A stretch of DNA of 64,000 nucleotides. Source: Haplodiscus bocki. Lineage: Eukaryota. Of this stretch, positions 936 to 63,474 are shown one piece after another. The notes under the pieces were generated by a model. It did not search any database. It had not been told where the DNA came from and was given only the letters and a program-made list of their open reading frames with translations. The translations under genes and the position numbers were made by a program. Where the stretch lies: NCBI GenBank assembly GCA_965655095.1, contig OZ296659.1, forward strand, positions 33,914,001 to 33,978,000, read 5' to 3'. Numbering within the stretch: position 1 is the stretch's first letter; each line of letters opens with the position of its first letter.

Positions 936-1170
936 ACTCCACCACCTCCGCTTGCTCAGCTCATTCTCCTACTTCGAGCTCTCTCGCAACGTTTGGAAAT
1001 TTGCTTCGTATAAAGTGTTGTCTGAAATTTATTCAAATCTATTGAATCTGGAAGAATCTACTTCCGAACGGTAAAGGTTTGATTTTACGAGAAAAATTCA
1101 ACACAAGCGGCTGCTCACTTTCTACTGTGGGGTTTGGACTAACTCCAAAGTAGAGCTTTGCAAACATTTA

Positions 1171-1240
1171 AGACGAGCAGGACTCGAACCCGCACCTTCA
1201 AATGTGCAAATCGAATGCTCTCCCAATTAAGTTACTGTCC
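1171..1240 (-). pseudogene. tRNA-like relic (tRNA pseudogene or tRNA-derived SINE head; GCA/Cys-like anticodon region)
   Basis: Reverse complement is GGACAGTAACTTAATTGGGAGAGCATTCGATTTGCACATTTGAAGGTGCGGGTTCGAGTCCTGCTCGTCT. It has an A-box-like D arm, a GGTTCGAGTCC B box/T loop and a TTCGA/TTGAA anticodon stem with an oversized loop. The acceptor stem is poor. Confidence 0.6.
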
Positions 1241-2056
1241 TATTTTTTGTAGTCTGCTAAGTTCCACCTGTGTAGCCACCTTGCCGAATGTTGCCTATGC
1301 TTAGAAATGTTGTTCTGAAAAGTTCACTAGGCATTTTCGAGAGATCTTTTCCTCGTTCATTATTGGAGTAATAAAGTCCGTGATAAAACCATTTTTCCTT
1401 GTAGCTCAGTTTTGATTTTGATGGCGAGCGGATGGTTTTCCTGTAGCATAATGGAATGTAAAACCCAAGATTTAGAAAAATATGGACAGAAATCAACTTA
1501 TACCATTGATATCCTGTCAGTGCACTTTAGCCCATACATAAACAAGCAAAGACTTTTTTGAAATCAACTCTCAACAGAGGTGTAGGCTTCCACCACAACT
1601 TTTGAATATTGATTCGAGCTGTATGCTCGCGCGCTTCAAGCGTTTTTTGTCGCTTCTAAAAATGTTGTGGGCTTCCGACTTCCGAGTTTGGTAATGGTGC
1701 GCTCAAAATTCATTCCAAGTTATTGGCAACCGAAGGTGGTCTCTAGCATCAGCATCGATTCAATATATTCTTTTTTCGGTTCATACATGAATGCTAACCT
1801 CTATTGATGCCAGCTTAGTTCTGGTTGTCTTCTGCCCACCGCTTTGTCAAAATATAAGAGCAGAAACAATTTGAGTTGGACAAGATGAACTGGATCCCCT
1901 GAGACATTCGACGTGCCTTTCAAAGTTTGTTTGATCTTGGAATTGTTTCCTTTCATGTTCTGAATCCCCAAGAAGACCGTATATATGCACCTCACCAGTC
2001 CATTGTTTTTTGTCGGCGCGTTTGTAGAAAAAGTCGAATATTATATTGAGCACTTT

Positions 2057-2593
2057 TGTAATAAATTGATTAGAGGAAAGAAAAGAAACAATGACGTCAG
2101 CGAATAAGCTGTCAGTTGTCAAATTGAACTTCAAAATTATGCTCAGCGATTACACTTCTATGCTCCAGAAAACAATTAAAGCATGGTTAATAAAATGGAA
2201 CTATTCTGAGACAAGAAGACACCTTATCGCCTAAATTACTGAAAATAACTCGAATTTCTAATTATCAATAATTCAAAAATGTATTCCTCGAGAACGAGTG
2301 AATAACTTAACAGAATACCGTAAATCCATCTCTCAGTGAAAGTCTTAAATTGATAGTTTTCTATTTAAATATGTTCTTCGGTTCATTGACAAACCGAAAA
2401 CAATTGAAGCCAAATTGACGGGGAACGGGCATATAAACCACTAGATTTTCAATATTGAATGAGGAAAAATTGTCTTAAATTATTAGCTGATTGAGCGAAA
2501 TCTTGGACAAAAATCAGAAAATCTAAAAAAAATTATTTATGATCTTCACTGCAAATCTTTTTTTCTGCTAAATCTAAAACAAAAAAGCCTACA
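2057..2593 (+). repeat. 5' LTR of element A
   Basis: TGTAATA...CCTACA; about 90% identical by eye to 11584-12126. Confidence 0.95.
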
Positions 2594-2739
2594 AATTGAT
2601 GGCCATAGTCAACGAACCTCTTTTTCTCATTACTCTAAAAATCTACACTTTTGCAATTTCATTTGTTTTACGATTACACAATCTGCTTCGACTTATCTAC
2701 TCCAAAAAGTAGCAGACCCGAAAAATTTCACCCACAAAA

Positions 2740-4130
2740 ATGATAAGTGCTTCCACTGTCCCATTTCTTTTATTCTTAGTTTCGGTCATTTTTCTTGTAG
2801 TTTTGTCACTTTTTCGTCTTAAAATCAAAACTCAAGCAAATTTTATTGATTTTGTGATGAAAAACTTCTCTGGTACCGAGCCTGAAGATGATGCAGACGT
2901 TTTTGTTAAACAAATTGAACATAAAATTAAAGTAACTTGAGGACATTTTCCCGCTACGGGTAATGATCGAGAAAACTATCGACAAAAACCGTCAACGAGC
3001 ACTTTTTGCACCTTTACTTCGCGGACCAGCAGCAGAATGGTATGCTGCCAATATTAACGAGGATGACGCTGCCCACACGTGGTACTTCATAAAACGAGAA
3101 TTTCGTACACGTTTTACTGATGGTCGGGATAGAAAAAGATTTCGATTTCAGGCTGAAAACATTAAACGTACTGAAAATGAGTCCATGAAAACATGCTTGC
3201 AAAGAGTTTAAAAAACGGCTGAGAAACGTTTGCCTACAATCTACGTCGTTGGGGCCACTGCCGCTCAGCGAACGGCTGCAGACAATCAAATGCAAACCCA
3301 TCGAAACGAAAAATATATTTCATTCGAATCGAAAGGTTTAGTTCCAAATCTTCTGAAGCAATGTTCGTACAAAAGAATCCTTGAAAACCCACTTACTACT
3401 TGGGAACAACTAACTGCTCATCTTATCAAAAAAGATTTGTGTTATGCAATGAGAGCAGATGGCGAGGAATTTTCCTCCTCGAATGACAAATTGGTAACCA
3501 TTGAGGAACAGTTGAAAAGTTTGCAAGAAGCATTCCAATCACACAGTGTAAATGCAGTGAATCTAAACCCGCAAAATCCTCAAATGAATCCAAATTTCAC
3601 CCGTTTTCGAAAACCTGGCCACACGGAAGGCACACAGTAATGTAATGTCCCAAAAAACAGAACCAGTCAAATTTCCGATCCCAAAATTTCAATCTCCCAC
3701 GACAAAAAAACTTTGGAATCTATTCTCACAGAACTTTTCGACCACTCAAAGGAACTCAAAATCAGTGTAATCACAGACATTTTACAACACAACAAAACTC
3801 AGTACAAGCTCGGAATCGTTTTCCTCTAAACAGAAATGGTTCCCAAAGAAACTTTCAAAATCAGCAGCGCAACTATCTCCAAAACTCTTATCGACAGAAT
3901 TACCCAAGCTCCTACCAAAATTATTCAAATCAGCGTGATCCTCAACATCCCCCTTTGCAAAAATCAAAAAAGGAGGCAAACCGAAAACAACTACCAAACA
4001 ATCAGTATAAAAATGAGCCAAATGTCACAGAACAAATCAATATGATCCGACAACATCCGAATACGAATGCTTTACAAATGCAAACTCCTAATGCCCTGAC
4101 GTATCAAGCTCTTCGTGCTGGTTGCCATAC
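2740..4130 (+). pseudogene. gag: gag of element A (frameshifted)
   Basis: FSGTEPEDDADVFVKQIE, LRGPAAEWY and W..IKREFRTRF capsid-like motifs; degenerate zinc knuckle near 3595-3650; N/Q-rich tail. Confidence 0.85.
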
Positions 4131-4131
4131 C

Positions 4132-4560
4132 CTTCTAAAATATATCAAAGGAGACATTTTCTAATCAACAGAGAGCTTAACTCTTTGTGCATTGGCAGAT
4201 TTTGCGATGCGAAAAGGTATCACCGCAGAAGTGGTAGAGAAATTCCCATTTTTGTGAAGTTCCGCTGCGCAATTTTCTTTTGATCCTGGAACATTTTTTG
4301 CCTATTGGCATGAAGAATCTCAGCGCCTTATTTACAATTTGGTAATTCAAGTAAAGTGCAATGATAAATCAAAACCTCCTGATGTAGCCAACGCAAAAGA
4401 GGCATTGAGAGAGCATGCGTTGAGAAATAAAGTGAAGGTGACTGCAATGCCCCGACGGGCAAGCGCTCTTGAAAGATTACCGCGGAATGAAATACAAACA
4501 ATGCTTCCAGACATTTTTTGAAAATCTGGAATTCAAATTCAAGTGCATTTTCTTCGATTT
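4132..4560 (+). pseudogene. TARG1/OARD1 (Poa1p-like) macrodomain between gag and protease
   Basis: One frame with internal stops: LLKYIKGDIF*STESLTLCALADFAMRKGITAEVVEKFP...RLIYNLVIQVKCNDK...EALREHALRNKVKVTAMPRRASALERLPRNEIQTMLPDIF, then a shift into ENLEFKF. It is collinear with TARG1 motifs YVKGDLF, SLAHCISEDCRMGAGIA, YIYYLITK and MPRIGCGLDRL. Confidence 0.88.
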
Positions 4561-4714
4561 TCTTCTTAACGACCGTTATCTGGACCCCGCCGTGATTATG
4601 TCAGTGGAGTCCATAGTCTGTACTCTTCAAATTAAAGTCGTATACGCCTTAGCAATCAAAATGTCGAATATTTGTTGATCTCTATATTCACACCACCGGA
4701 GACGTGAATAAAAA

Positions 4715-5775
4715 TAGTGGCCTTAGAAATTGAATTTCTTCTAAACACGGGGGCAACCTGATCCGTTATAAATTTTAACACTTTTAAGGCCATATCAGAC
4801 GTTGGTCAAAATAATACCGTTGTCCGAACCCCAACTCACACAACTGCAATCGAAAATGTTGAAATTCGAATGTTGGGTTACACAATTCTTCCTCTCTCAT
4901 TGGACTTTGATGGTAATTATGAGATTAAACATAAAATGTGGATTACACACAAACACACGACAAATATTTTGGAAATGCAGTTATTTCAGGAGTATTGCGC
5001 AAGTCTTAACTTCGAAATCCCTCTCCCTGGGTTAAAAACCTTTCAAAAAACCATCAATACATGGCAAACACCAGAAAGATAAAAAGTATCCTGGTTGTTC
5101 GAAATTTTTCCCATAACTCTCAACAAACCAGTCTCGATAGAACCATTGAGTACAGATCTCATAAAACATCAATGCCCTCATGAGAACTCTTGTTATACGG
5201 GAGGTACTACCTACAAGCACTTGAAAACTGCAAAAGTGAAAGGATTAAATTATTATCATACGATGGTAAGTGCAAACGAAAGTTCCTTTCCAATTCTCAC
5301 TGCAAATCAAAATCCAATGCCCATAACTCTTCAAAAAGGACTACTAGGCGATACATTTACTCCAATTTTGGATAAAGGAAAAAGAAATCAACTCTTTATG
5401 ATTCATAAACCGCTCCAAGTAGCAGAAGTCCCAACTGAAAATTGTTGATTTCTTGATGTTGAAGAGATTTTTGAACTTTCAATCGAAGACAAACGAAAAA
5501 ATGAAAGAAATTCTATCAGTTGTCAAGAAGTAAGTAGAGAAACATTCACTCCTTTGAATTTGGACAACGAATGTCAAGAAGAACTTAGAGGGTCATGTCT
5601 ACCAAATTGTAATTAAGCAATTTCTATACACAGAGTTTCGACGTTACCTCAAAATGTTCATCATCACTTTTCACAAGAAGAAGTATCTTTCCTTTCCTTT
5701 TTTGACTTCAAAGATTCGGATCTTACTGATGCGGAAATCAGGTCTGTTTGTCAAATTCTGAATAAAGATAATGAA
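4715..5775 (+). pseudogene. pol: pol 5' part of element A: aspartic protease, linker and first helix before RT
   Basis: LEIEFLLNTGAT*SVIN is a degenerate DTG protease motif (about 4725-4785). FDFKDSDLTDAEIRSVCQIL at 5701-5760 resembles the pre-RT helix and then stops abruptly. Confidence 0.8.
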
Positions 5776-5777
5776 TA

Positions 5778-7604
5778 AATGAGTTTGAGGTTACTGAACC
5801 TTTTACAAACCAGATCAGCTCATTGAGCGATATCCTTAAAAATTTTAAAAAGGGCGAAAATGTCAATGTCCCGCGGACAAAAATTTAAAAAGATTGTGTT
5901 GGAAATGTCACTGAGATTTGTGAGATTGTCAACCCGAACAATGAATTACCTGCCCTACTATCGGTTTTTAGACTGGATCAAGAGAGTCAAGCACAATTCG
6001 ATATTGTCAAAAAGCAAACCCTATCCAACGCTGATGAAAATTTGTCTTCACTAGACGTAAATTTTATCGATCTCGACACTCCACTGACTACGTCTCTTTT
6101 ACTGACTGAACAGAAACTCGACTCCGTATCGTCAAAAAATCGAGACTGGTTAAAAAAAAAGAAGAGAGACCAAGCCCTAAAGACCCGCCATATCATTCAC
6201 GAGCATTCAGAAGCTACGAAAAACTTTGAATTACTTTTCGTTGATCCAGATACAAATCGTGTTTGCTACAAAGAAATTATGCACAATGGTGATCACATTG
6301 AGAAAAAGACTTGTCTTCTTTGTCATTACTGTTTGTAGCGCCTCTCCTGTCACGCTCTCATGAATTGTCAGGCCATTTAGCCCAATCGAAAACATTAGCA
6401 AACTTCAAGAGATATTTTTTCTTCCCAGGAATGTTTAAACGGGTCACTGTTCTGATTATTGACTGTTTGTCATGTCAAAAGCATAAACTAAAACGAAAAA
6501 ATTTAAACCAATCTCCTCCTCAGCCTTGGGGAGGCCTGGAGACTATTGGTTTTCGGACTATTCGTATCTACCATAACGGATCTGTTTATCCTAATAATTC
6601 AGGTATTGAACATTGCCTCGTAATAGTAGATTATTTTTTTCAATTTATCCAAGTCTATCCATTTATAAGTACTTCGGCGTTGCATACAATAGAGCCTATC
6701 GAAAACCGGATTTCAAATTTTGGAATTCCCCACATTATAGTATACGACAGAAGAAGTGCCTTTTTCAAAAAAGAAGCAACTAACTGGGCAACAGAACCAA
6801 GGATTACTTTAGCTCCACTAACTGATCACTCACCATGGTAAATCACTCACCATGGCTAATGGTAAAATTGAAATACAAAATAAACACTTTACTCAATTTT
6901 TCCGTCTTTTTTCATCAACAAATGGCTCAAAATGGGCGTTATTGGCACCAAAATTTGCTTTTGCGCATAATACGAGTGTAGATACCGCCACTCGTTCTAG
7001 CCCTAATGGAAACTTCTTGGTTTCAAAACCTGAAATACCGCTTTCTCTTAAGCTCAGACTTATGAGAGATACAAGGAAACTATGTAACTCTGACTTCTGT
7101 GAGGAATTACCTCCACACACTCTCAATATTTCGCAAACAACTACATTTCTTGATTGATTGTTGCATAAATGTCCTTCACCTCGTTTTTTTACCCGTGAAA
7201 ACCAATAAAAATGATCGTATGCAGAAACTTATTGTGTGTCGAGAGGAATTACCGACAAAGCAAAAGAATATAGGAATGAACATTAGTTGGGGAAAGAATT
7301 GCAAGTAGGACAAAAAGTCCTTCGCGAGAAGTTCACCGGAGAACTCAATAAATCAAAGAAAATGTCTTCTTTCCGTTCAAGCCCACACACGTTTCTCCAA
7401 AAGATTACAAATACCAACTGTGAAACTGAGTTAGATGAAAACCCCGGAAAAATATTACACAGCCATAGGAACCCTTTAATTGAGTATCTTCCAAAAGATG
7501 CATCTGTTCCGTCAATGATTAAGGCTTACAATAGACCTCAAAAGTCGCCCGGTGAGCATCGTCAATTCTATCGAAAATTAAATGAAACTGCTGAAGACGA
7601 CTAA
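5778..7604 (+). pseudogene. pol: pol 3' part of element A: tether and DDE integrase with GPY/F region
   Basis: HHCC motif SHELSGH...DCLSCQ; LVIVDYF, IVYDRRSAF and PWANGKIE (a 17-bp duplication at about 6826-6859 breaks the frame); AFAHNT; LQVGQKVL...HRNPLIEY. Confidence 0.9.
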
Positions 7605-8199: not shown

Positions 8200-10314
8200 A
8201 ATCCCCGTATGTATCATATTTTTCCCGTGTTTTCCGTGTGTTCTGTCTGGTTTCGATCATCACAATGATTTTTAGAACGTAGATCCCTCATTATTTGTGT
8301 TTCATTTTGGTTGCCCAAAAATTACTGAAAATAAACTTTACTCTCTGAATAAAAACTCGAAATGTAACATTGAAGTGAGTAATTCTGAAACTACCCTTAT
8401 CTTAACCCTCGACCTGTAACAACGCGTTTACTCGACGACTATTAGTGCCACAAGATGCACCATTCGCCGTGGCGAAAAAAATGGTATGGTGGATTACATG
8501 GCCATAGTGACATCGAAACTAAGCAAAACTCATTAACAGTAAATCTATCAATAGAACCTCAAGCATGCGCTGTAGCTGCAGAAAGAGGACCAAATTCAGT
8601 CCCAAAAGACCATGGCGATAAGTCAATTCCAATAGTTTAAAATGTTCTCAAAGATAGTGTGATTACGGAAAAAAACGATGGAGATTAGGTAGGACACGAT
8701 GATCCAAAATCTCCAAACGAATGTAAAGATACTCGCTGGGTGGTGAGAGATTCCTACCGGACTTTCACGGAAAAGGTAATACTAAACGTTGATCTCAAAT
8801 CAATGCAAATCCGAAATGTCAAAAATTTTGTTTTACATTATAAAGTGTCAGAGGGAGGAAGTCCTAGTACCTTTCTAGACGTTGAAACATACACTTGGAA
8901 CCAAACTGAAAACTGCTTGTTCAAGAAAATTGGCTCTGTAAATAATGGTCAAATGATTAATTATAATGACCAACATTTCATTTCAACAGATCCAAAATCC
9001 AAGTCGGACGATCCAAATTTCTTTTTCGAAATTTTCAGTGATCAGCAAAAGATTTGCAGTCATCCGCTACCAGTATACTTTACAAATTATGATGATTTTT
9101 TCATGCAATACTCTGGCGGTTTTGACATCAATACTGGTCAACCAAAGAGCCCGCATCAAAAAAAACTTACTCTTATTAAATTTCGCATTGAGGGTGATAA
9201 TGAAATTGACTCTCGAAATTTACAGTATGATGTACACCTAGGAGCTAAATTTGACTGTATTCTTCATCGAACAAATCTGAATATTCATGTCTCTCAAGTA
9301 AAATTGATACAAAATCAGTGTTAACTTGAACTTGCCCAAAGGCTTAAAATTTTGACAATGTCTTTAGAAAACACGCGATTAGCTGGATAACTTCTTACTG
9401 GTAACCGTTCTATATTTCGTGACACTAATGGGTGTGTCGGTTGGCTATACCATTGCCCAAAAGTCAGATCCACAATACGTGTGATGGAAAAATGTTATGA
9501 TAAAACACCAATATTTTATAAAAAACTAGTGCATTTTGCTGATCCAATCACTCGTCAGACTTTTCATTCTGCCAATGAAAATTCATGTCAACATGCGACT
9601 CAAAATCTGTTTCAACTCGATATGGACAATGATGATTCTTGGTATAATTTGATACCTCATCCAGTAGTTCATAACAAGCCATTAGTACTTTCGCCGACTA
9701 TGTTTTCTCGTCCAAGTTTGCATGTAATTTATTTTTCTAATAATGTGGACTGTACACACGGAAACAGTTGTCACATTTTTGGAACGATGTTAAAATTGGC
9801 TATCATTCGAAATATATAATTAAAAAAACACTCGTGAACTGGTCAGTCAGAATACTGATTCATATCAAGTAGTAAAGGATTACTCTTCTCCAGTTTACCT
9901 TGCCAATTTTATGTCACCTGAAAATTACACTGACGGCTTTAAAGAAACCGTTGGAAATATCACTCATTAACTGGAAGAACTGGGCATTTTTGCATTGTTT
10001 TTGTTTGTCAGAGTGGTAATTAACGTTATTATAGTAGTAGTGAACGCATTTGAAGTCCAAGAACTAACTAGAAAAACTGTAGGACTTTCGAAAGAACTCC
10101 TCGCAGCAACGTATGATCTGTTTTGTTGTCAGTAATTAGGTCAATTTTTGGGATAACCGATAATAAGGAAACGAATCCACTATATGAAACAAGTAATGCA
10201 TTGTGCATTGAAGCGCCTAATGAAACTAAGGAAGAGGCTCCCTTCCTTTATTCAGACACAAAAATTTATCGACAAGGAACCGCTCCTCAAGAGGTCCCCG
10301 CACCTCTTCATTAA
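8200..10314 (+). pseudogene. env: env-like glycoprotein of element A (chuvirus G / class III fusogen-like)
   Basis: Hydrophobic N-terminus; FGCPK..LYSLN..C; YTWN..ENC; QNQC*LE..LAG*LLTGNRS..GWLYHCPKV..KCYDKTPIFY..HFADPITRQTF..C; TM segment about 9980-10050; short tail ending 10314. Confidence 0.8.
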
Positions 10315-10424: not shown

Positions 10425-10867
10425 GATGGTAAACTACTCTCAGATCTTGACTAAACGTCACTAAGTCCAAAAAGCGAAAATTTTGATGGAAAGTTAAAAA
10501 TTCGTAATCCTATACCAATCGTCGAATCTGCAACTTTACGGGCAAAGCAAATGGTATCTTTAAATACACGAAAACGTCACTTTCACCACAGATCATTTAT
10601 CAATCAATAGAGTACAGGCTTGAAAAAACTAACCAACCATCATTGAGAAACCGATTGGACCTTGAACAAACTCTAGAACGGTACGAAACATACACAAACT
10701 GTCCATGTGGAAATCCCGGATTTGTAAATTACTTGAAGTATTCATTGAAGAAAGACATCAATCAAAACAGTTGGAGAATAATCCACTTTGACTTTCCAAG
10801 AAATAATTACATGATAAAAACAACGATCTGAACGGACAAACTTTATGGGTATCACCAAAACAAATGA
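10425..10867 (+). pseudogene. Accessory ORF X1 downstream of env (unknown, degraded; has CPCGNPG motif)
   Basis: Frame open from about 10508 to 10831. Reading through one TGA leads to a TGA at 10865-10867 that overlaps the next ATG. Confidence 0.45.
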
Positions 10868-11292
10868 CAGCCTTTCCTGATTTGGACAACTTAACACCAA
10901 GTGTAAAACCGAGTATGGTTGCAGATTTTTCAAAAATTCCCGCTGTCAAACGGAATATGGTTTCTGTGAGTTCACAGACTGAAGTAAAAACTGCCTCGCT
11001 AGGAACTGCATGGACTGAAATACATGATATTGAGCTGCAAGAAAAATGCTATGGACTGAAACGAGATCTTGACAGACAAAAACGATTAATTGAAGAATTA
11101 GAGAAGAAACTACAAATCAAAACGAAAGAATCACAGATGCATAAAGATGCTTACAAAACTATCAGAGATGACCACGTAGAAACTCATGTATTAGTATCTA
11201 AAAATCTGAAAAATATGCAAGCAATGGTTGAAACGTCTGAACTAAGACGTGCTGAATGCATTAAAATGATTCAAACCATTCTGGTCAAATAA
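10864..11292 (+). CDS. Accessory ORF X2 (coiled-coil protein; probably extended to 11502 originally)
   Basis: Intact 142-aa ATG ORF with heptad-like LKRDLDRQKRLIEELEKKLQ. The same frame continues to 11502 across two stops. Confidence 0.6.
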   Translation: MTAFPDLDNLTPSVKPSMVADFSKIPAVKRNMVSVSSQTEVKTASLGTAWTEIHDIELQEKCYGLKRDLDRQKRLIEELEKKLQIKTKESQMHKDAYKTIRDDHVETHVLVSKNLKNMQAMVETSELRRAECIKMIQTILVK

Positions 11293-11583
11293 TTAAAACC
11301 CTATAAAAACTCTCTGGAAAAAATGCTTTCGGGTGCAACTAAAACAAAAGGAAAATTTTACAAACATCATAGTCTATTCAGTTTAAAAAAAGGAACCTTA
11401 AAGCCAAATTGGGCTTATTCCTGGCTACCAGACGGGAAATGAGAAGAGATAGAAGAATGGAGCTCAAAATACAATCTACCACTCGATATTGAAAATACAT
11501 AACTGCTCTGACAGAATTAGATACAGCTGTGGTCTGCAGATAGTTAGAAGTAGCACTTTAAATTTCTTAACAAGGGGGTTAGT

Positions 11584-12126
11584 TGTAATAAGCTGATTTG
11601 AGGGAAAAAAAGAAACATTGACGTCAGCGAATAAGCTGTCCGTTGTCAAATTGAACTTCAAAATTGTGCATCAGCGAAGATGGTTCTATGCTCCAGAAAA
11701 CAATTAAAGCATGGTTAATAAAATGGAACTATTCTGAGACAAGAAGAAACCTTATCGCCTAAACTACTGAAATTAACTCGAATTTCTAATTATCAATAAT
11801 TCAAAAATGTAATCGTCGAGAACGAGTGAATAACTTAACAGAATGCCGTAAATGCATCTCTCAGTAAAAGTCCTAGATTGAAAGTTTTCTATTTATATGT
11901 GTTATTCGATTCATTGATAAACCGAAATCTATTGATGCTAAATTGACCGGGAACGGGTATATAAACCACTAGTTTCTCAAAATTGATTATGAAAAAATTT
12001 GTCATAAATTATGAGCTGATTAAGCGAAATCTTTGACAAAAATCATAAAATCTAAAAAAAATAAATGATTGATCTTCACTGTAAATCTTTTTTTTTCTGC
12101 TAAATCTGAAACAAAAAAAGCCTACG
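11584..12126 (+). repeat. 3' LTR of element A
   Basis: TGTAATA...CCTACG (terminal CA mutated to CG), followed by TSD CTTT. Confidence 0.95.
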
Positions 12127-15459: not shown

Positions 15460-18245
15460 TAAGTTGTTTTCGGACATGGGGCGAAAAACTTTCGGCTTTT
15501 GTCAGAATCTTTCCAGCGGGGTTGTCTGCATTCTAAGTGTCCGAAGATACATTTTGAGAAAACTTTATCTTGAAAAGTGTCCAAGTTTGTACCACTTTTA
15601 GATTTTGAACCAAAACTTTTCGTCAAAATTTTTCGCCGGAGTTGTCAAAACTTCATTCTTCGTGTCCATATGAACGATTTGAAGAATTCTTTTGTAGAAA
15701 AAAACTTTTTTTACCATTTATTGACCTTGAGCAAAACAATTTTGGCCTTCTAGCAAAAGTTTTCTTTGGCAGGGTTGTCAACACTGCAATTTACGTGTCC
15801 ATAGGGACATATTTGTTTGAGCAAAAAGCGTTTTTTAAAAAGCTATATTTTTAAAAACTTGCCGACATTGATTGAAACATTTGTGGCTTTTTGTCAAGGG
15901 TTTTTCCACAAGGTCGTCAAAACTGCTTTTTACGTGTCCATTGAAACGTTTTTTTTAAGAAAAACGTTTTTTTCTCAAGGAAATATAATCTTCCTTATTA
16001 TTTTCGGACTTGGAGCAAAAAAATTGGCCGCTGCCAAAATTTTTGTCGGCATGGTTGTCAAAACTTCATTCTAGATTTCCATGGGAACAATTTGGAGGAA
16101 AAAATGTTTTCTGAATAGATTCTTTTACTTTCATCAGTTTTGGCCATTGAGCAAAAGAAAATCGGCCTTCTGTCAAAAAGTTCTTCGGCCAGGTTGACAA
16201 AACAAAATTCTAAGTGTCCGAAGGTACCTTTTGAGGAAAAACAGTTTTTTTTCAAAAAATTTATACTTTTTATTCATTTTCGGACATTGAACAAAATAAT
16301 TCCAGCTTTCTCACAAAAATTTTTGCCAAAGTTGTCAAACTGCATTCTATGTGTCCATAGGAACAGTTTAAGAGAATCTTTTTTAACAAAATCATCTTTT
16401 TGATATCATTTTTAGTATTGAGCGAAAAATTTCCGTCTTTTGGCTAGAAAATTTTGGCAGGGTTGTGAAAACTGCATTCTGCGTGTCCATGGGAACACTT
16501 TTTGCAAACTTTTTTGTTTGGGAAAATCAATTTTTAAACACTTCTGGATTTTTAACTGAAAGTTTTTGGCTTCCTGTGGGAATTTTTTTGGGCGGGATTG
16601 TCAAAACTACTTTCTACGTGTCCAGAAGTACACTTTGAGAAAATTTCATCTTGAAATAAAATCAAGGTTTTTTCTCAATTTTAGATTTAGAGCCGAAAAT
16701 TTTTGGTCTTCCGTCCAAATTTTTTCGCCGTGCTTGTCAAAACTTCATTCTACGTGTCCAGATGACCATTTTGAAGAAAAGAAGTTTTTTGGAGAAAAAA
16801 CTTTTTCCATCATTTTCCGAACTTGAGCGCAATAATTTCGCATTTCTTGCAAAAAATTTCTCTGGCAGGAATGTCAAAACTCTTGTTTACGTGTACAAAG
16901 GAACATTTTTAAGGAAATAGCGTTTTTTGAAAAAATTTTTTCATAAAAGTTTGCGGACATTGATTGAAACATTTGTGGTCTTTTGTCAAGGGTTTTTCTA
17001 CAGGGTCGTCAAAACTTCCTTCTACGTGTCCATTGAAACGTTTTCAGGAAAAACAATTTTTTCCAAAAAAAAATCTTCCTCATCATTTCCGGACTTGGAA
17101 CAAAAAAGTTGGCCTTTGCCAAAGTTTTCATCAGCATGGTTGCCAAAACTGCATTCTACGTGTCCATGAGAAAGATTTGAGGGAAATTTGGTTTTCTGAA
17201 GAGATTTTTTCACTCCCATCAGTTTTGGCTATTGAGCGAAAAAGTTTGGGCTTTCTGGCAGAAACTTTTCCGGCAAGGTTGCCAAGACAGCATTCTGAGT
17301 GTCCAAAGGAAACTTTGACCTTTTGAAGGAAAACTGTTTTTTCTCAAAAATTTCTACTTTTTCAATCATTTGCGGACTTTCAACAAGAAAATTCCAGCTT
17401 TTTGACAAAATTTCTTGACAAGTTTGTCAATCTGCAATACATGTGTCCAAAGAAACTTTTTGAAGAAAAACAATTTTTATCAAAATAACGTGTTTTCAAA
17501 ACTTTTTCGGACAATGACCGAAAATTTTTCGGCCTTTTTTCAAAACTATTTTGTCAGGAATGTCAAACCTGCAGTCTTGGAGTCCATGGGAACATTTTCG
17601 GGGAAAAAATTTTCCGACAAAAACTATCTTTTTGATATCATTTTCTGACATTGAGCGAACATATTTCTGTCTTGTCAGAAAAAATTGACAAATTTGTCAA
17701 AACTGCATTCTTCGTGTTCATGGGAACAGTTTGTGCAAACGTGTTTTTTGAGAAAAAAAAAATCCATATTTTCATCATTTTTAGATTTTGAGCTGAGATT
17801 TTTTGGCCTCTTATCGGAATTCTTTTGGCGGGGTTGTCAAAACTACATTCTACGTGTTCAGCGGAACCTTTTGACCAAAGTTTTTATTTCCGAAAAGAAA
17901 AAACTTTTCCTATCATTTTCCGGCAATGAGCGAGACAATTTTCGCCTTCTGGGAAAAAAATTTGACCTATTTGTCAAGACCGCAGTTTACGTGTCCATAG
18001 TGATAATTTTGAGGAAAAAATATTTTTTGAACTCATATTTTTCGGAACTGTTTTCTGTCTTTGTTTGAAACAATTTGGGTCTTTTGTCCAATACTTTTCT
18101 TCGGGGTTCTCAAAACTACGTTCCACATGTCTAGACTCACTATTTGAGGAAAAACTCCTCGATGGAAAAAATTTTTGTTTTCAAAAATCATTTTCTGTCC
18201 CGTAGCAAAAATTATTTCAGCCTTTCGTGGAAAAAACTGGGGCAG
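15460..18245. repeat. Degenerate tandem satellite, ~135 bp monomer, ~21 copies
   Basis: Core gttgtcaaaactgcattctacgtgtcca recurs at about 15521, 15642, 15773, 15912, 16053, 16192, 16330, 16461, 16597, 16733, 16871, 17004 and on to 18105. Confidence 0.9.
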
Positions 18246-33149: not shown

Positions 33150-36100
33150 TAAATGTTGAGAGGAAGAGGTTGTATTCCGTCTTGCAGATCTTTCTTTTCG
33201 GGATGAACTTATGACATCCTTCTCTTTAGTTGCTCGTATGTGGCGACAACATGATGTTTTGTGCGGAAACATCTATTTGTTGAAGTTACATTAACAACCT
33301 CTTCCTATACTTTGTGATACTTGGACACAGGACAACCACCACAGTCTTCAAGATTTCTTTCATTCAAACCTCTGATAATGAATTTGAAATTGTTTTATTG
33401 GTTGTCATGTCATAGAAAAGTACGTTTTGCTGAACAGGCAATTCTTTTCTGGGCAGCAGAATTCTTCCCTGGAGATACCAAGTTCTCAGTATTTGTGTTT
33501 CTTATGCTCAGTGCAGCAAGTAGGGAGAAGGGATTTTGTTAGTGGCTTGGCTCAAAATTCGCCGCTGCAGTCTCCACTTCGCAAAGAGTTGAACTCCTGT
33601 TTCATTGTTGGTCGGATACAAACATACAAGTTGTGCGCGGATAATGCTAGATACAGCAGTTCTGTATCCAACTTCGGCTCTTCAAACTTTGCAACATCGC
33701 AATATTTTCAAAAAAGTTATACTAAAGCTCAAGATTTCTCAATTTTTCATCTTGCAGAATGAAAAAAACTGACAACTATTGGTTTTTTGTGTTCATTCTC
33801 TGACTTTACCAGCTTTAATTCATTCAATTGATCGTATAAATAACCCAAGAGCTTAAACAATTTCCTTTGATTACTATTTGCATCACTGAGACATCTTGTT
33901 ACTACATGTCGATTCTGATCCACAACCTGATAACCATATAAACTGTTTGCTAGTAACTCTTTTGTCCCACCCACAACACTGGGAATTAGATTTTCGTCTC
34001 CCTCTCTTGTATCATTCACTGCAGCCTGAACAAGTTTGATGAAGTATTTCTTTGGAGTGCCGTGCCAAATTGATAAACCAGCCCCAAAAAAGAGAAGCAA
34101 CGGTGTAATGATTGTTCCATTTGACCAAAAAAACTCTCGATCTAAGCATTCTCCTAGGTTGCATCAAAATTTCTTCTTCCTCAGCGTATGCTTTTATAGG
34201 CCGACCAATGTCACCTCTGAAAGCAGGAATTTATTTATTGATTGGCGAAATTTTGACAAAACTTTCCATGAGCTTCTCGGGTACTTCAATATCACCTTGA
34301 ACATAACCGTTAAACCTTTCATTTTTGATATTTTCAAAAAGTAGCCCCTCTCTGAGAAGCATGTTGCAAGAGAATAATTCACGCAAATGCTGCTAAACAA
34401 TGTTATCCATCTTGTATAATTTCCACACATCACATTCCTACATCTCTTTGACAGTTTTTGTTTCGTTAAAAACATTGTTTTCGTAACTCGTCTAGCTCTC
34501 TCACTTTTTTTGCCTCGCTGAATTCTATCGTCAGTGAGAGATGAACAAGTTTCTCGACATGAACAAAAACGATATTAGCAACCCAGAGCGTCATAAGCAT
34601 CAATTTTTTGTTTGCTTTTCGTGTAAAAACATTCCACCTTACACTGTGGTCTGACTCTCTAAAAGTATGACATGAGCAAATTTGCAAAACCCCTCGTCTT
34701 GTTTTGACCAGGTTTCAATTTTCGAGATTCAAAATCTAGCTCTCATCAACTGTACAGACACGTAAGCATCTCTTGACACATAGAGTAAGCATAAAGCTGA
34801 CTAGCATCACTTTTAACGATGGTTTTGCTTCAGTTTGTTGAATCACGAATAAGAGTTTTGTTCACAATAGCTTTCCTCCTAAAAATAATGGACGGTCCAC
34901 CAGGCAAGTGGTGGCGTCTTTTCTCCAACAAACCCTTGTTGCTCTCTGAGAAGGGTTGAAACTTTGCGGTAGTTGACTTGTGAAGACAATTGTTTCCAAG
35001 ATTTGGCAAAGTACATCGAAGCCTTAAAATGTCAGTTCCTTCGTTTTGGTAAAAATCAACCATCTTTTCCTAGCTTCTAACGTTGGAACAACGTCCTTGT
35101 TGTTGTGCCAGCGCAATATGTCTGAAAAAGTATACATGTTTTCTTGTTCCCACACACCAATCAAGTGTTGATAGTTTTTTGTCAAACTGGAGGTAGTTGA
35201 ATTATTTTCATTTTTGATGATTCTTCTTTGAATGTCATTCAAGCATCTACTAAAGTTTGAAAGTCTCAACAGTCTTTTTCAAAGAGAATATTCTAGCGCT
35301 GTTTGTTATAGAAGGTTTCATAGGGAGGAGGTTGAGTATTGTTGAGCTTTTCTGGATTATCCAACCATTCCTAGGGAAAAAGACCTTTCGTCACTGAAGT
35401 CCTGTAGGCCTTCAGGATAGAATCAAGACTCGTACCTCCTCCAAAAAAAGTCATTGTATCTAGCTACTGAACATCACCAAACTTGAAACATACAAACTGA
35501 TTAGCCTTCTTGATCACTATTGGCTCAGTACTCCATTCATTAACAAAGAGAGACCAGTAAATTACCAAAATAAATTTTTGTCGTCTTTTGCGCTGCTGAA
35601 GCCAGAGACAGTAAGAACGTTGCAATACCTTTCCAAGTATTTCTGCGGATCAATGAGTTGTTTCTTTTGTGTTATTGAAAACTGTGTCCATACGTCCGGC
35701 TATTCTTCTTCGATACACCCATCTTCAATTCCCATTACTGGTCCAATGTGACATCGATGTTGATTGGGAAGAGGGAAAATTTGATTAAGTTTGCTGTGTA
35801 AAATAGTCTCAATCTCTTAAAACATCTTTTTCGTCTGAGTTTTTCTCTATGTTGCTAACTCATCGAGAGCATCAACAAATGATTCAACCGAATCTCTTGG
35901 ATTGGAGTTGCATATAAAGATGGTTTCTTCAATCGAGTCAGAGGAAACTGACAGAGATTTTTCAACGTGGTTACCGATCCAAGTGTAATGTCCGTAATGT
36001 GGAATTTGTCCTCATGAACACATATTGATTCAAACTCAAAAATTGGCATGTTTTTGAAGAGCTTTCAAACGTCGGTGTAAAGGATAACGAACGAGTCTAG

Positions 36101-39100
36101 TTTGTCAATCAGTGTTTCCTGTAGTTGCTGAACATCCTTCGGAAAAACCTGTTTCACTTTTTTTTGTAAGTCGTCAAAAGTCATTCCAGGAGGTGAGTCG
36201 TTTTGATGAATTGATCACATGAAGGAAAACTATTGGCTTTGAAGACAGCTTTGATATTGGAAGCATAGCAAAGGTGACTATTGTAATGGAATAGCTGTAC
36301 AGTTTTAGAAAAATTGCCCACACTCTTCTCCGCAAGCTCCCCAATCATAGATCCCCCTACAATGTCAATGTCGTACAGGAAACTATAAACTTGAATATTG
36401 TGCTCCACTGCTGCAATATCTTCCATACAAACAAGTCGGAAGTTTGCAGGATCAATCCTACCAGTCTTTTCCGGGAATTGAATAAATAGTTCAGACTTTC
36501 CCTCTTTGAGACTTTCATTTCCATGTAAATACAACGCTAGAGCTATAAAGAGACATAAACTATCTTTATATGGTTTTTGGGGTTTTTCTCCGCAAGTGTT
36601 AAGCACTTGACGGAATGATTTTTCATTAGTGGATCTAGTAATAGAACGTCTCTACACCACATGGGATTTTCCTTGAGTCATGCTGCAGAAAAGGTAACAT
36701 TAATCAAATTGTAGATATTCTCGTCTTTTGTACACGATTCAATGACAGCAGTTTAAATAACCCAAGAGCTTAAACAATTTCTTATTGATTACTATTTGCA
36801 TCACTGAGACATCTTGTTACTACATGTCGATTCTGATCCACAATCTGATAACCATATAAACTGTTTGCTAGTAACTCTTTTGTCCCACCCACAACACTGG
36901 AAATTAGATTTTCGTCTCCCTCTCTTGTATCATTCACTGCAGCCTGAACAAGTTTGTTGAAGTACTTCTTTGGAGTGCCGTGCCAAATTGATAAACCAGC
37001 CCCAAAAAAGAGCAGCAACGGTGTAATGATTGTTCCATTTGACCAAAAAAACTCTCGATCTAAGCATTCTCCTAGGTTGCATCAAAATTTCTTCTTCCTC
37101 AGCGTATGCTTTTATAGGCCGACCAATGTCACCTCTGAAAGCAGGAATTTATTTATTGATTGGCGAAATTTTGACAAAACTTTCCATGAGCTTCTCGGGT
37201 ACTTCAATATCACATTGAACATAACCGTTAAACCTTTCATTTTTGATATTTTCAAAAAGTAGCTCCTCTCTGAGAAGCATGTTGCAAGAGAATAATTCAC
37301 GCAAATGCTGCTAAACAATGTTATCCATCTTGTATAATTTCCACACATCACATTCCTACATCTCTTTGACAGTTTTTGTTTCGTTAAAAACATTGTTTTC
37401 GTAACTCGTCTAGCTCTCTCACTTTTTTTGCCTCGCTGAATTCTATCGTCAGTGAGAGATGAACAAGTTTCTCGACATGAACAAAAACGATATTAGCAAC
37501 CCAGAGCGTCATAAGCATCAATTTTTTGTTTGCTTTTCGTGTAAAAACATTCCACCTTACACTGTGGTCTGACTCTCTAAAAGTATGACATGAGCAAATT
37601 TGCAAAACCCCTCGTCTTGTTTTGACCAGGTTTCAATTTTCGAGATTCAAAATCTAGCTCTCATCAACTGTACAGACACGTAAGCATCTCTTGACACATA
37701 GAGTAAGCATAAAGCTGACTAGCATCACTTTTAACGATGGTTTTGCTTCAGTTTGTTGAATCACGAATAAGAGTTTTGTTCACAATAGCTTTCCTCCTAA
37801 AAATAATGGACGGTCCACCAGGCAAGTGGTGGCGTCTTTTCTCCAACAAACCCTTGTTGCTCTCTGAGAAGGGTTGAAACTTTGCGGTAGTTGACTTGTG
37901 AAGACAATTGTTTCCAAGATTTGGCAAAGTACATCGAAGCCTTAAAATGTCAGTTCCTTCGTTTTGGTAAAAATCAACCATCTTTTCCTAGCTTCTAACG
38001 TTGGAACAACGTCCTTGTTGTTGTGCCAGCGCAATATGTCTGAAAAAGTATACATGTTTTCTTGTTCCCACACACCAATCAAGTGTTGATAGTTTTTTGT
38101 CAAACTGGAGGTAGTTGAATTATTTTCATTTTTGATGATTCTTCTTTGAATGTCATTCAAGCATCTACTAAAGTTTGAAAGTCTCAACAGTCTTTTTCAA
38201 AGAGAATATTCTAGCGCTGTTTGTTATAGAAGGTTTCATAGGGAGGAGGTTGAGTATTGTTGAGCTTTTCTGGATTATCCAACCATTCCTAGGGAAAAAG
38301 ACCTTTCGTCACTGAAGTCCTGTAGGCCTTCAGGATAGAATCAAGACTCGTACCTCCTCCAAAAAAAGTCATTGTATCTAGCTACTGAACATCACCAAAC
38401 TTGAAACATACAAACTGATTAGCCTTCTTGATCACTATTGGCTCAGTACTCCATTCATTAACAAAGAGAGACCAGTAAATTACCAAAATAAATTTTTGTC
38501 GTCTTTTGCGCTGCTGAAGCCAGAGACAGTAAGAACGTTGCAATACCTTTCCAAGTATTTCTGCGGATCAATGAGTTGTTTCTTTTGTGTTATTGAAAAC
38601 TGTGTCCATACGTCCGGCTATTCTTCTTCGATACACCCATCTTCAATTCCCATTACTGGTCCAATGTGACATCGATGTTGATTGGGAAGAGGGAAAATTT
38701 GATTAAGTTTGCTGTGTAAAATAGTCTCAATCTCTTAAAACATCTTTTTCGTCTGAGTTTTTCTCTATGTTGCTAACTCATCGAGAGCATCAACAAATGA
38801 TTCAACCGAATCTCTTGGATTGGAGTTGCATATAAAGATGGTTTCTTCAATCGAGTCAGAGGAAACTGACAGAGATTTTTCAACGTGGTTACCGATCCAA
38901 GTGTAATGTCCGTAATGTGGAATTTGTCCTCATGAACACATATTGATTCAAACTCAAAAATTGGCATGTTTTTGAAGAGCTTTCAAACGTCGGTGTAAAG
39001 GATAACGAACGAGTCTAGTTTGTCAATCAGTGTTTCCTGTAGTTGCTGAACATCCTTCGGAAAAACCTGTTTCACTTTTTTTTGTAAGTCGTCAAAAGTC

Positions 39101-40327
39101 ATTCCAGGAGGTGAGTCGTTTTGATGAATTGATCACATGAAGGAAAACTATTGGCTTTGAAGACAGCTTTGATATTGGAAGCATAGCAAAGGTGACTATT
39201 GTAATGGAATAGCTGTACAGTTTTAGAAAAATTGCCCACACTCTTCTCCGCAAGCTCCCCAATCATAGATCCCCCTACAATGTCAATGTCGTACAGGAAA
39301 CTATAAACTTGAATATTGTGCTCCACTGCTGCAATATCTTCCATACAAACAAGTCGGAAGTTTGCAGGATCAATCCTACCAGTCTTTTCCGGGAATTGAA
39401 TAAATAGTTCAGACTTTCCCTCTTTGAGACTTTCATTTCCATGTAAATACAACGCTAGAGCTATAAAGAGACATAAACAATCTTTATACGGTTTTTGGGG
39501 TTTTTCTCCGCAAGTGTTAAGCACTTGACGGAAGGATTTTTCACTAGTGGATCTAGTAATAGAACGTCTCTACACCCCATGGGATTTTCCTTGAGTCATG
39601 CTGCAGAAAAGGTAACATTAATCAATTTGTAGATCTTCTCGTCTTTTGTACACGATTCAAGGACAACGGTGTTACATGGTAGATTATTCATTTTTGTCAA
39701 GTTTTCTGCGGCAGCAAAAAGTTGAATTCATTCCAACAGAGTTTTTGTTTTTCGTGCAAAATAATACCAACAACTACCTTCTTTTACGTTTTTGATCGCA
39801 AACCCGAATGCTACATTCAACTTATCTGCACATTTGAGTCTGCCGAAAAGATGATCCATTTTTCCCAACAAAAATTTCGGATCCAGAAAGTCCATAGCAA
39901 AGTTAAAAACTCTGTGTCTACCACGCTACATCTCGCTCGCCACCAAAAATTGCTTGCACGTATGTAGTTCATCTTTCAAGGTATTGTCATTGACATCTCC
40001 CATTATGTTTGTAGCCTCAAAATTTAAAGTTACTGATCCTCTCTGTGCGCCATGTTCCCTCCTCTTATGTTCTCGCAATATGTAAAAGCTGTGAGAAATT
40101 TTAACATATTTTTTGCAAAGAAGAATATTTGTATCAATTCCTGACGAGTGTTTCTTCACAATGTGAAATTTCATTTCATCGCTGAACTTTGTTGACAAGT
40201 TTGTACGAGAAAGACATATAAAGGATCCAGTAGAACAACCTTTTTTGTGACGCGTAATGTTAATTCGAGTAGTTTGGGTACCATAAGTTTCACAAATTAT
40301 GTTTTTGCTGCGATTGAGGGAAGGCAT
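33150..40327 (-). pseudogene. polB: Protein-primed family B DNA polymerase with N-terminal C2H2-like fingers (internally duplicated)
   Basis: FEFESICV (ExoI), GFSSAKDD (ExoII), WHNNKDVVPTLEA (ExoIII), GGPSIIFRR, DASQLYAY (A), ELLANSLYGYQ (B), LDTELLYLAL (C). Confidence 0.9.
33837..39670. repeat. Near-identical tandem duplication, unit ~2917 bp
   Basis: 33837-36753 is repeated at 36754-39670. ORF pairs are offset by 2918 with only scattered substitutions. Confidence 0.97.
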
Positions 40328-54718: not shown

Positions 54719-54918
54719 NNNNNNNNNNNNNNNNNNNNNNNNNNNNNNNNNNNNNNNNNNNNNNNNNNNNNNNNNNNNNNNNNNNNNNNNNNNNNNNNNN
54801 NNNNNNNNNNNNNNNNNNNNNNNNNNNNNNNNNNNNNNNNNNNNNNNNNNNNNNNNNNNNNNNNNNNNNNNNNNNNNNNNNNNNNNNNNNNNNNNNNNNN
54901 NNNNNNNNNNNNNNNNNN
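54719..54918. other. Assembly gap (200 N)
   Basis: Run of N. Confidence 1.
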
Positions 54919-61779: not shown

Positions 61780-63474
61780 AAGGCAACTCTGAGAAACAAG
61801 AGGAAACTAGCGGCAGTTTCAGGAGAAGCTCCCGAAGGTAGTAGAAGCAGTAGAGGACAGAACGTACTTGACCCTGAGTGAACCCAGGGTTACATCTCCC
61901 AGGTCTCCGAGGAGAATGAAGGGAGGGTAACTAAGAAACTGTCGAAGGAGTTTAACAAAACGGAGTCACGTATCTTGGGTGCTCTATCGAAACTTGACGA
62001 GTTTCTTCTTAACCCACAAGTTCGGACTTGTTCTGTGGCCGCTCACGGAACCTCCAGAAACTCTAATTTAGAAAACCGGGAAACTCATGAGGATCGCTCC
62101 TCAAACGATGCTCATCCCGAAGGGGGGTATTTTCCTCACCACTCAGGACAAATCAATGGTTCTGAGGCAGACATGGTGACTGAATCCTACCCTCACATGG
62201 TGACAGGAGCTACAGGAGAAATTCGTCACTACCCTCACATGGTGACAGGAGCTACAGAAGAGATCTACCACAACACTCACACGATGACAGCAACTCAAGA
62301 AGAGATTCCCTACTGCTCCCCTACTACTTCGTCAGGCAAACAGAAGAAGGCGCGCTCCACAAGTCAACCTCAATTCCGCAGTGACAATACCCCTGCGACA
62401 ATTGAGGCAGACCAGATTTTGTTGGCCCTTCAACAATTGGCGACGAACTCCAATTCAGCCAATTTCATTAATAAGATTAGCCGAATCTCGAAATTGCCTA
62501 AATCTCTGACAACGACGATGCCTACGTTCGATGGGAAATCAGAAAAATTCGATCTGTTTGAACATCTATTCCAAACGAGTCTGAAAATCCACAATCAGCT
62601 GACGGAAGAAGACAAGATAAACTACTTCCACTCTCTCATGCGCGGTGATGCTCTACAGACTTTCAAAAACATCACTAGCCCCAACAGAGAGAAATTGGGA
62701 GAAATCCTGACTGTGTTCCGTAGAAAGTACGTGAAACCCCAGTCAATGGCTACGGCAAAATACAGGTTTCAACGACTGGTCTTTAACCCCTCAAACCAGA
62801 AGTTAATTGATTTTCCAGATGAACTCCAGAAAAAAGCAAAAGACGCATTCGGAGTTGCAGCTCAAGCGATCATCGAGCAATTCATCTATGCCAAAATGCC
62901 CCCGCACCTGAAGAAAACAATTAACCAGGCGCATCTGGAAAACGGCACGTATGAACAGATTGTGTCGCATCTTGAAAGGGAGTTAGAATTGAATGGTTTC
63001 GAAGCTCCAGATGAAATGCCCATAAACACTGTGACGCAGCAAGCCCCACACCAAAACTCTAACAAGCCCAGACCAACATGCCACCATTGTAAAAAACCAG
63101 GTCACTATCAAAATCAGTGCCGTCAACTCAAACGAGAGAAAGACCAAACACGAAATAACATAAATAGTGCCAACAACAACAACAATGGTAGTGCCCAAAC
63201 AAACTCTAACCCCAACAACAACAAAGTTGCAAACAATACCAAAGGAAGCAATATAAATAATCAAAGACACAAAAGATCTAGACGTGTCTTCCCACCCTGT
63301 GAGACATGTGGTAGAACCAACCACTCCACAGATAAATGCTATCTTGGAGCAAACGCAGCGAACAGACCACCTCCACGAAATAGACGGCCGGAAGGACAGA
63401 ACCAAAGCCAGCAAAAAGATGATCAAAACATCTCAGATGGAAATTTCCAAGCTGCAGCCCAAGCTCTAAACTAA
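61780..63474 (+). CDS. gag: Gag with two CCHC knuckles (start codon mutated, one early stop at about 61879)
   Basis: MPTFDGKSEKF, LMRGDALQTF, CHHCKKPGHYQNQC, CETCGRTNHSTDKC; HMVTG tandem repeat (42 bp period). Confidence 0.92.

Follow-up and report, generated by a model that had tools for sequence, protein, structure and literature searches.

A TARG1/OARD1-type macrodomain at the end of the Gag protein of a Ty3/gypsy retroelement

Why should a Gag protein end in a domain related to an enzyme that strips ADP-ribose? The question was raised by a window of 64,000 nucleotides of Haplodiscus bocki (contig OZ296659.1, positions 33,914,001 to 33,978,000 of the forward strand), hereafter the window, to which all positions refer unless stated otherwise. 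A sequence-only reading had proposed that positions 4132-4560 encode a TARG1/OARD1-type macrodomain, fused in frame to the tail of Gag and upstream of protease, whose two catalytic positions had decayed. Frame 1 of this stretch indeed reads the motifs YIKGDIF, DFAMRKGI, LIYNLV and AMPRRASALERLP, and is interrupted by stops at 4162-4164, 4255-4257 and 4519-4521. The similarity is far beyond chance. The largest uninterrupted piece (4258-4518, 87 aa) matches only human TARG1/OARD1 chains in the PDB, at E 2e-4, and finds 15 relatives among 1.84 billion representative proteins. A cellular tandem TARG1-like protein aligns by tblastn to 4135-4554 over 142 residues in a single frame (E 2e-12). The absence of a significant macrodomain hit had been named in advance as grounds for rejecting the reading. 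The Pfam Macro model (PF01661) does not reach significance on the broken pieces of the window, but it does on the natural intact homologue described below, with 24.4 bits for a cut-off of 22, and 12 of 26 aligned relatives match it at E<=1e-3. The observation is therefore real.

The domain lies inside a ~10 kb LTR element, and no other copy of this element was found in the window. Its parts, all on the forward strand, are the following.

2056-2594 (+): 5' LTR, a direct repeat of 11583-12120 (about 91% identical), matching both LTRs of the intact relative L002.
2827-3645 (+): Gag capsid region (Pfam Retrotrans_gag PF03732, E 6.7e-5, on 2963-3208) and remnant of the CCHC zinc knuckle, collinear with the Gag-macro ORF of L002 and broken by 4 extra bases near 2984, 1 missing base near 3630, and in-frame stops at 2938, 3209 and 3643.
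3646-4131 (+): low-complexity linker of about 150 residues rich in Q/N/R/F/Y between the zinc knuckle and the macrodomain, conserved as a feature in all copies and found in the homologous proteins P0016, P0018 and P0004.
4132-4560 (+): pseudogenised TARG1/OARD1-type macrodomain, with Q (caa) at codon 4348-4350, equivalent to TARG1 Lys84, and E (gaa) at codon 4471-4473, equivalent to Asp125.
4626-4635 (+): end of the Gag-macro ORF, with the gag stop codon (4633-4635) preceded by a mutated version of the slippery heptamer seen in L002, as revealed by an alignment of six copies.
4700-5080 (+): aspartic protease remnant, whose active-site motif reads NTGAT at 4744-4758 followed by a stop, brought into the frame of the macrodomain by one extra base near 4721 (L002 pol has LLDTGATC and weak Pfam aspartyl-protease hits).
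5774-5779 (+): junction of a ~1.56 kb internal deletion that removed most of RT and RNase H, identified by blastn against the related loci L001 and L002 (5774/5779 corresponds to L002 5535/7092).
6302-7604 (+): integrase remnant with zinc-binding H2C2, catalytic core and C-terminal part (Pfam Integrase_H2C2, E 7.9e-11, and rve, E 3e-4, on 6302-6838).
8446-10311 (+): env remnant, a class III (gB/chuvirus-like) fusion glycoprotein (PF24664 Monjiviricetes_fusion, E 5e-14, on 9391-9816; the same family at E 5e-39 in L002 env).
10807-11289 (+): remnant of a fourth ORF downstream of env (317 aa in L002, at L002:11859-12812), of unknown function and without a Pfam match, looking coiled-coil-like by eye.
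11583-12120 (+): 3' LTR.

This copy is old, dead and non-autonomous. Its gag-macro region carries seven in-frame stops (2938, 3209, 3643, 4162, 4255, 4519 and 4567) on top of the frameshifts and the deletion, and it cannot make the protein. The macrodomain is in the same frame as the Q/N-rich Gag tail (3646-4161), whereas the capsid part of Gag (2936-3637) sits in another frame because of two indels. Rfam and tRNA scans gave only a tRNA-Cys(GCA) gene at 1168-1242 (-), about 0.8 kb upstream of the 5' LTR; some Ty3-type elements target Pol III genes, but one case proves nothing. An open 499-aa ORF at 61975-63474 (+) has a BEL/Pao-type Gag domain (DUF1759, E 3.5e-6) and two CCHC-like knuckles, and is probably a younger, unrelated LTR element running off the end of the window. 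There is also an array of diverged ~135-bp repeats at 15600-17900, with a higher-order period of about 1.09 kb. Two nearly identical 141-aa ORFs without Pfam match lie 2.9 kb apart (36181-36606 and 39099-39524, -), a local duplication of an unknown repeat. A nearby ORF (33747-34100, -) contains an NSLYGYQ-like stretch reminiscent of family B DNA polymerases, although Pfam found nothing in it. A run of N occupies 54719-54918.

We then asked whether the fusion is the design of the family or an accident of this copy, since absence of the domain from other family members had also been stated beforehand as a refutation. All close relatives come from ENA, JGI or Logan metagenome assemblies, and no NCBI-named protein came closer than 24-27% identity in pol. 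Locus L002 (ENA ERZ26859043) holds a young intact copy with LTRs 98.7% identical. It has a 601-aa Gag-linker-macro ORF (P0016), a 1675-aa pol (PR, RT, RNase H, integrase), env in two ORFs, and the fourth ORF. The gag-macro ORF ends in TAA directly after U UUA AAU, and pol is in the -1 frame, open from 16 bases upstream of that stop (L002:4379-4400, equivalent to 4617-4638 in the window). This is the classic layout for a -1 ribosomal frameshift, read here from sequence only; the RNA fold downstream is not better than shuffles (z -1.0), and the heptamer is mutated in the window and in most decayed copies. The start of the L002 contig (1-1092) repeats part of the element's own pol (4756-5847) at 99.8% identity, which is either a neighbouring truncated copy or an assembly artefact. 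At least five full-length gag-macro ORFs of 601-630 aa sit on different contigs within the 90% cluster, and a JGI metagenome contig holds another uninterrupted one. Hence, the fusion to the Gag tail, upstream of protease, is the design of the family.

The natural domain (P0016 residues 428-590) aligns with human TARG1 over its full length at E 1.4e-22, followed by Thermus DarG at 1e-6 and by nothing else below 1e-3 in the PDB. An AlphaFold2 model of this intact relative, built on 26 natural sequences (pLDDT 81.9), superposes on TARG1 with TM 0.87, rmsd 2.3 A and 36% identity. The top 50 Foldseek PDB hits are macrodomains or macro-fold designed proteins, in line with a three-layer alpha/beta/alpha macro fold; TARG1 takes ranks 1-8 and DarG ranks 9-12. 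MacroD-type domains rank far lower, with VEEV, Getah and MACROD2 at TM 0.59-0.64 and 13-17% identity, and Poa1p-type phosphatases appear among the weaker matches. In the viral structure library, the best matches are TARG1-like domains of Kadipiro virus VP8, of a Cressdnaviricota protein, and of negev-, virga- and flavi-like arthropod viruses. The domain also matches the macrodomain part of the DarG antitoxin in NCBIfam (NF048014, E 3.5e-10), but with 39.7 bits for a family cut-off of 250, and with gag and pol rather than DarT as neighbours, so that it does not qualify as a DarG antitoxin. These results place it in the TARG1/DarG (ALC1-like) class, and not among MacroD-type domains.

TARG1 works through a Lys84/Asp125 dyad with a covalent lysine intermediate (PMC7050489); one review writes Glu125 where the PDB sequence shows Asp. 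Conservation of the two residues across copies had been proposed as a check. The lysine is invariant in 26 of 26 aligned macrodomains and in all cluster members that cover it, and the aspartate is present in all gag-tail copies. Both are invariant in a second alignment of 10 sequences that adds integrase-linked, picorna-like-virus and ligase-III-linked relatives. The window copy lacks both residues, with Q and E in their place, whereas all intact family members have K and D, and these changes are thus decay of this copy. One pol-internal subfamily also has E at the second position, so E may or may not be tolerated. No repaired, consensus or ancestral version of any gene of the element was built; all searches and the fold used natural sequences or the broken pieces separately, and the natural intact copies answered the questions that a repaired translation or consensus protein had been meant to address.

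The same earlier list of checks asked whether the domain evolves neutrally. Using the Nei-Gojobori method, we found dN/dS of 0.28-0.45 for the macrodomain in pairs that include the intact copy, like the Gag capsid (0.26-0.46) and the protease region (0.30-0.61). Pairs of decayed copies gave 0.7-1.1, 0.48-1.11 and 0.38-0.97, respectively. Codon bootstraps put the upper 95% bound for the macrodomain at 0.54-0.80. The estimates use six copies, and the pairs with the intact copy are few and share the L002 branch. The domain has been maintained by selection in the replicating lineage, and the window copy decayed neutrally after insertion.

The distribution of the domain extends beyond this family. 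The closest Pol relatives fall into a clade (SH-aLRT 94) whose members carry a homologous TARG1-type macrodomain inside Pol, between protease and RT (P0020, P0023, P0025, P0026, P0028, P0030, P0033 and others), and some clusters have hundreds of members. Locus L004, from the same sample as L002, shows PR, macro and RT in that order (L004:9234-11183), and a relative also occurs in a Tara Oceans metagenome and in another ENA sample. Two more distant gypsy Pols carry a TARG1-like macrodomain after integrase, where chromoviruses carry a chromodomain (P0173 residues 1681-1828 and P0174 residues 1206-1342). A picorna-like polyprotein from a JGI metagenome (helicase, 3C protease, RdRp) ends in one with both catalytic residues (P0175 residues 1939-2078). 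The nearest cellular relatives (40-42% identity) are DNA-ligase-III-like proteins (P0166-P0172 and P0012) combining a PARP-type zinc finger, the ligase core, a TARG1-like macrodomain and the LIG3 BRCT domain, which links the subfamily to DNA-end repair. In a compact genome from another sample (L003:6001-9023), a cellular gene with two tandem TARG1-like macrodomains (P0008) sits next to a gene with FHA and PAR-binding-type zf-CCHH domains.

Was the domain captured once or several times? Gag-tail and PR-RT macrodomains share a 2-residue insertion and a Trp that cellular, integrase-linked and viral ones lack. This points to one capture followed by a move within the polyprotein, and to at least one further, probably separate capture for the integrase-linked domains, although the cellular sample is thin. 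The macrodomain tree resolves only three clans (gag-tail, pol-internal, cellular) and is unrooted, and so does not settle the matter. Other lineages of the same radiation lack the domain altogether; the Pol tree puts macro-less lineages between the gag-tail and PR-RT groups, and two of these were checked and truly lack it.

What does the domain do? Our analysis establishes its class, its place in Gag, the conservation of the dyad and the purifying selection, as well as the nature of the stretch in the window, the pseudogenised macrodomain of a dead copy of an env-carrying Ty3/gypsy (errantivirus-like) LTR element, a broken gene that does nothing. The frameshift, and hence the presence of the domain on both Gag and Gag-Pol, is read from the sequence, and everything that concerns function is inferred from homology. 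With moderate confidence, we consider the domain most likely to be an active ADP-ribosylhydrolase that uses the TARG1 dyad. In this view, the frameshift just before the gag stop would yield Gag-macro-PR-RT-RNaseH-IN, and every Gag and Gag-Pol molecule would carry the domain into the assembling particle, at structural-protein stoichiometry and next to the nucleocapsid-bound RNA, where it would remove ADP-ribose placed by host ADP-ribosyltransferases. The targets could be the element's proteins (Glu/Asp esters) or, fitting this macrodomain class better, its nucleic acids: base-linked ADP-ribose on genomic RNA or single-stranded cDNA, or ADP-ribosylated ends of the linear cDNA. A reverse-transcribing element exposes exactly such targets, and removing these marks would keep translation, reverse transcription and integration going. 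TARG1 hydrolyses Glu/Asp-linked ADP-ribose and ADP-ribose on nucleic-acid ends (PMC7050489, PMC11088682). According to a recent preprint, it is the selective eraser of base-linked ADP-ribose on RNA written by PARP10/15, which lowers translation (bioRxiv 10.64898/2026.03.31.715305), and DarG removes thymine-linked ADP-ribose from ssDNA (PMC7050489). The fusion of the nearest cellular relatives to DNA ligase III is a further clue to nucleic acids as substrates. Some observations call for caution. The first diphosphate-binding loop reads M-R-K-G in the gag-tail copies against M-G-A-G in TARG1. Of the three basic residues reported to bind RNA in TARG1, only one position is basic in some copies, by our reading of the alignments. 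There is no biochemical evidence for any member, packaging follows from the ORF layout and has not been observed, and the ADP-ribosyltransferases of the host were not examined. The interpretation of the sequence-only reading is thus supported in part: the class of the domain, its place in the Gag ORF, the decay of the catalytic positions and the remark that macrodomains of LTR elements mostly sit later in pol, which fits the sister and more distant families, all hold, while a particle-packaged enzyme and PARP-type surveillance of retroelements in this host remain inference.

Other explanations are less likely. The most likely of these, possible but doubtful, is that the domain is a reader or tether, binding mono- or poly-ADP-ribose to steer Gag or the pre-integration complex, for example to PARylated chromatin, DNA-damage sites or stress granules, much as chromodomains steer chromovirus integration. 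The ALC1-like class holds both readers and erasers (PMC7050489), the integrase-linked domains sit where chromodomains do, and the diphosphate loop differs from TARG1. However, the catalytic Lys and Asp, which binding alone would not need, are invariant across gag-tail, integrase-linked, viral and cellular relatives, and the closest structure is the hydrolase TARG1, not the ALC1 macrodomain. It is very unlikely that the domain acts on small metabolites (O-acetyl-ADP-ribose from sirtuins, or ADP-ribose-1''-phosphate from tRNA splicing) to change host signalling or metabolism. TARG1 was first described as an O-acetyl-ADP-ribose deacetylase, the name it bears in the PDB, and Poa1p-type phosphatases are among the fold matches, but there is no obvious benefit in packaging such an activity at Gag stoichiometry, Poa1p and MacroD matches are much weaker than TARG1 and DarG, and the nearest cellular relatives are fused to a DNA-repair ligase. 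Finally, a functionless passenger, whether a host TARG1 fragment picked up once or a host gene disrupted by the insertion, would fit the stops and lost catalytic residues of the window copy but is already contradicted by the position of the domain between the LTRs and its collinearity with gag and pol in six copies, by its single ORF with Gag in several intact copies, by its constraint, and by the recruitment of the same kind of domain at other positions in related elements.

The TARG1/DarG class stands out for removing ADP-ribose from nucleic acids, and here it is built into the structural protein of a retrovirus-like element and was recruited repeatedly, at three positions of the polyprotein. 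If the domain is active, ADP-ribosylation would be an axis of conflict between hosts and transposons outside vertebrates. A bolder and tentative reading, which we regard as unlikely though not excluded, is that ADP-ribosylation of nucleic acids (bases of genomic RNA or single-stranded cDNA, or ends of the linear cDNA) is an innate restriction on reverse-transcribing elements in invertebrates. Ty3/gypsy elements would have answered it at least twice by capturing a TARG1-type eraser, placed in Gag, between PR and RT, or after integrase, that travels inside the particle with the nucleic acid. The precomputed Pfam annotations listed for the Pol polyproteins that carry these domains do not include Macro, so that the domains can be missed.

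The counter-defence logic and the fold are familiar, while the class, the carrier and the Gag position are not. The carrier belongs to the recently surveyed env-carrying Ty3/gypsy elements of metazoans (errantiviruses) with gB/chuvirus-like env (PMC13524379), with which it shares the LTRs, gag, the pol order PR-RT-RH-IN and the class III fusion glycoprotein; this family adds the Gag macrodomain and a fourth ORF. That survey does not mention macrodomains or ADP-ribose, a study of extra ORFs in rotifer LTR elements does not mention macrodomains either, and full-text searches, which left out most subscription journals, found no description of a TARG1-type macrodomain in Gag or Pol of an invertebrate LTR element. 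Macro-domain ORFs are reported for fish epsilon-like endogenous retroviruses (Basta et al. 2009, as cited in PMC4977317; this work and Sharifi et al. 2013 are cited here through secondary sources), which are also retroelements that acquired a cellular macrodomain gene. Those are vertebrate Retroviridae with separate additional ORFs, and the class of their macrodomain was not compared; here the domain is fused into the Gag of a Ty3/gypsy element, or into Pol in sister families. Virus-encoded macrodomains are at present known mainly as MacroD-type domains of positive-strand RNA viruses (coronavirus Mac1, alphavirus nsP3, hepatitis E virus), which also lie inside a polyprotein and are thought to reverse host antiviral ADP-ribosylation (PMC7232374, PMC7729036). 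They belong to a different class with different catalytic chemistry, VEEV and Getah domains matching our model only at TM about 0.6 and 16-17% identity, and here the carrier is a reverse-transcribing element with the domain in its structural protein. The bacterial DarG macrodomain, the second-best structural and sequence match, shares the catalytic Lys and erases base-linked ADP-ribose on ssDNA, but our domain has no DarT partner and no DarG C-terminal domain. The closest known system is human TARG1/OARD1 (C6orf130), which gives the best sequence and structure match (36-37% identity), is likewise a minimal domain of ~150 residues, and has the dyad that intact copies keep. The domain described here differs from it in the 2-residue insertion and conserved Trp before the catalytic strand, in the changed first diphosphate loop, and in being not a free-standing cellular protein but the C-terminal module of a retroelement Gag.
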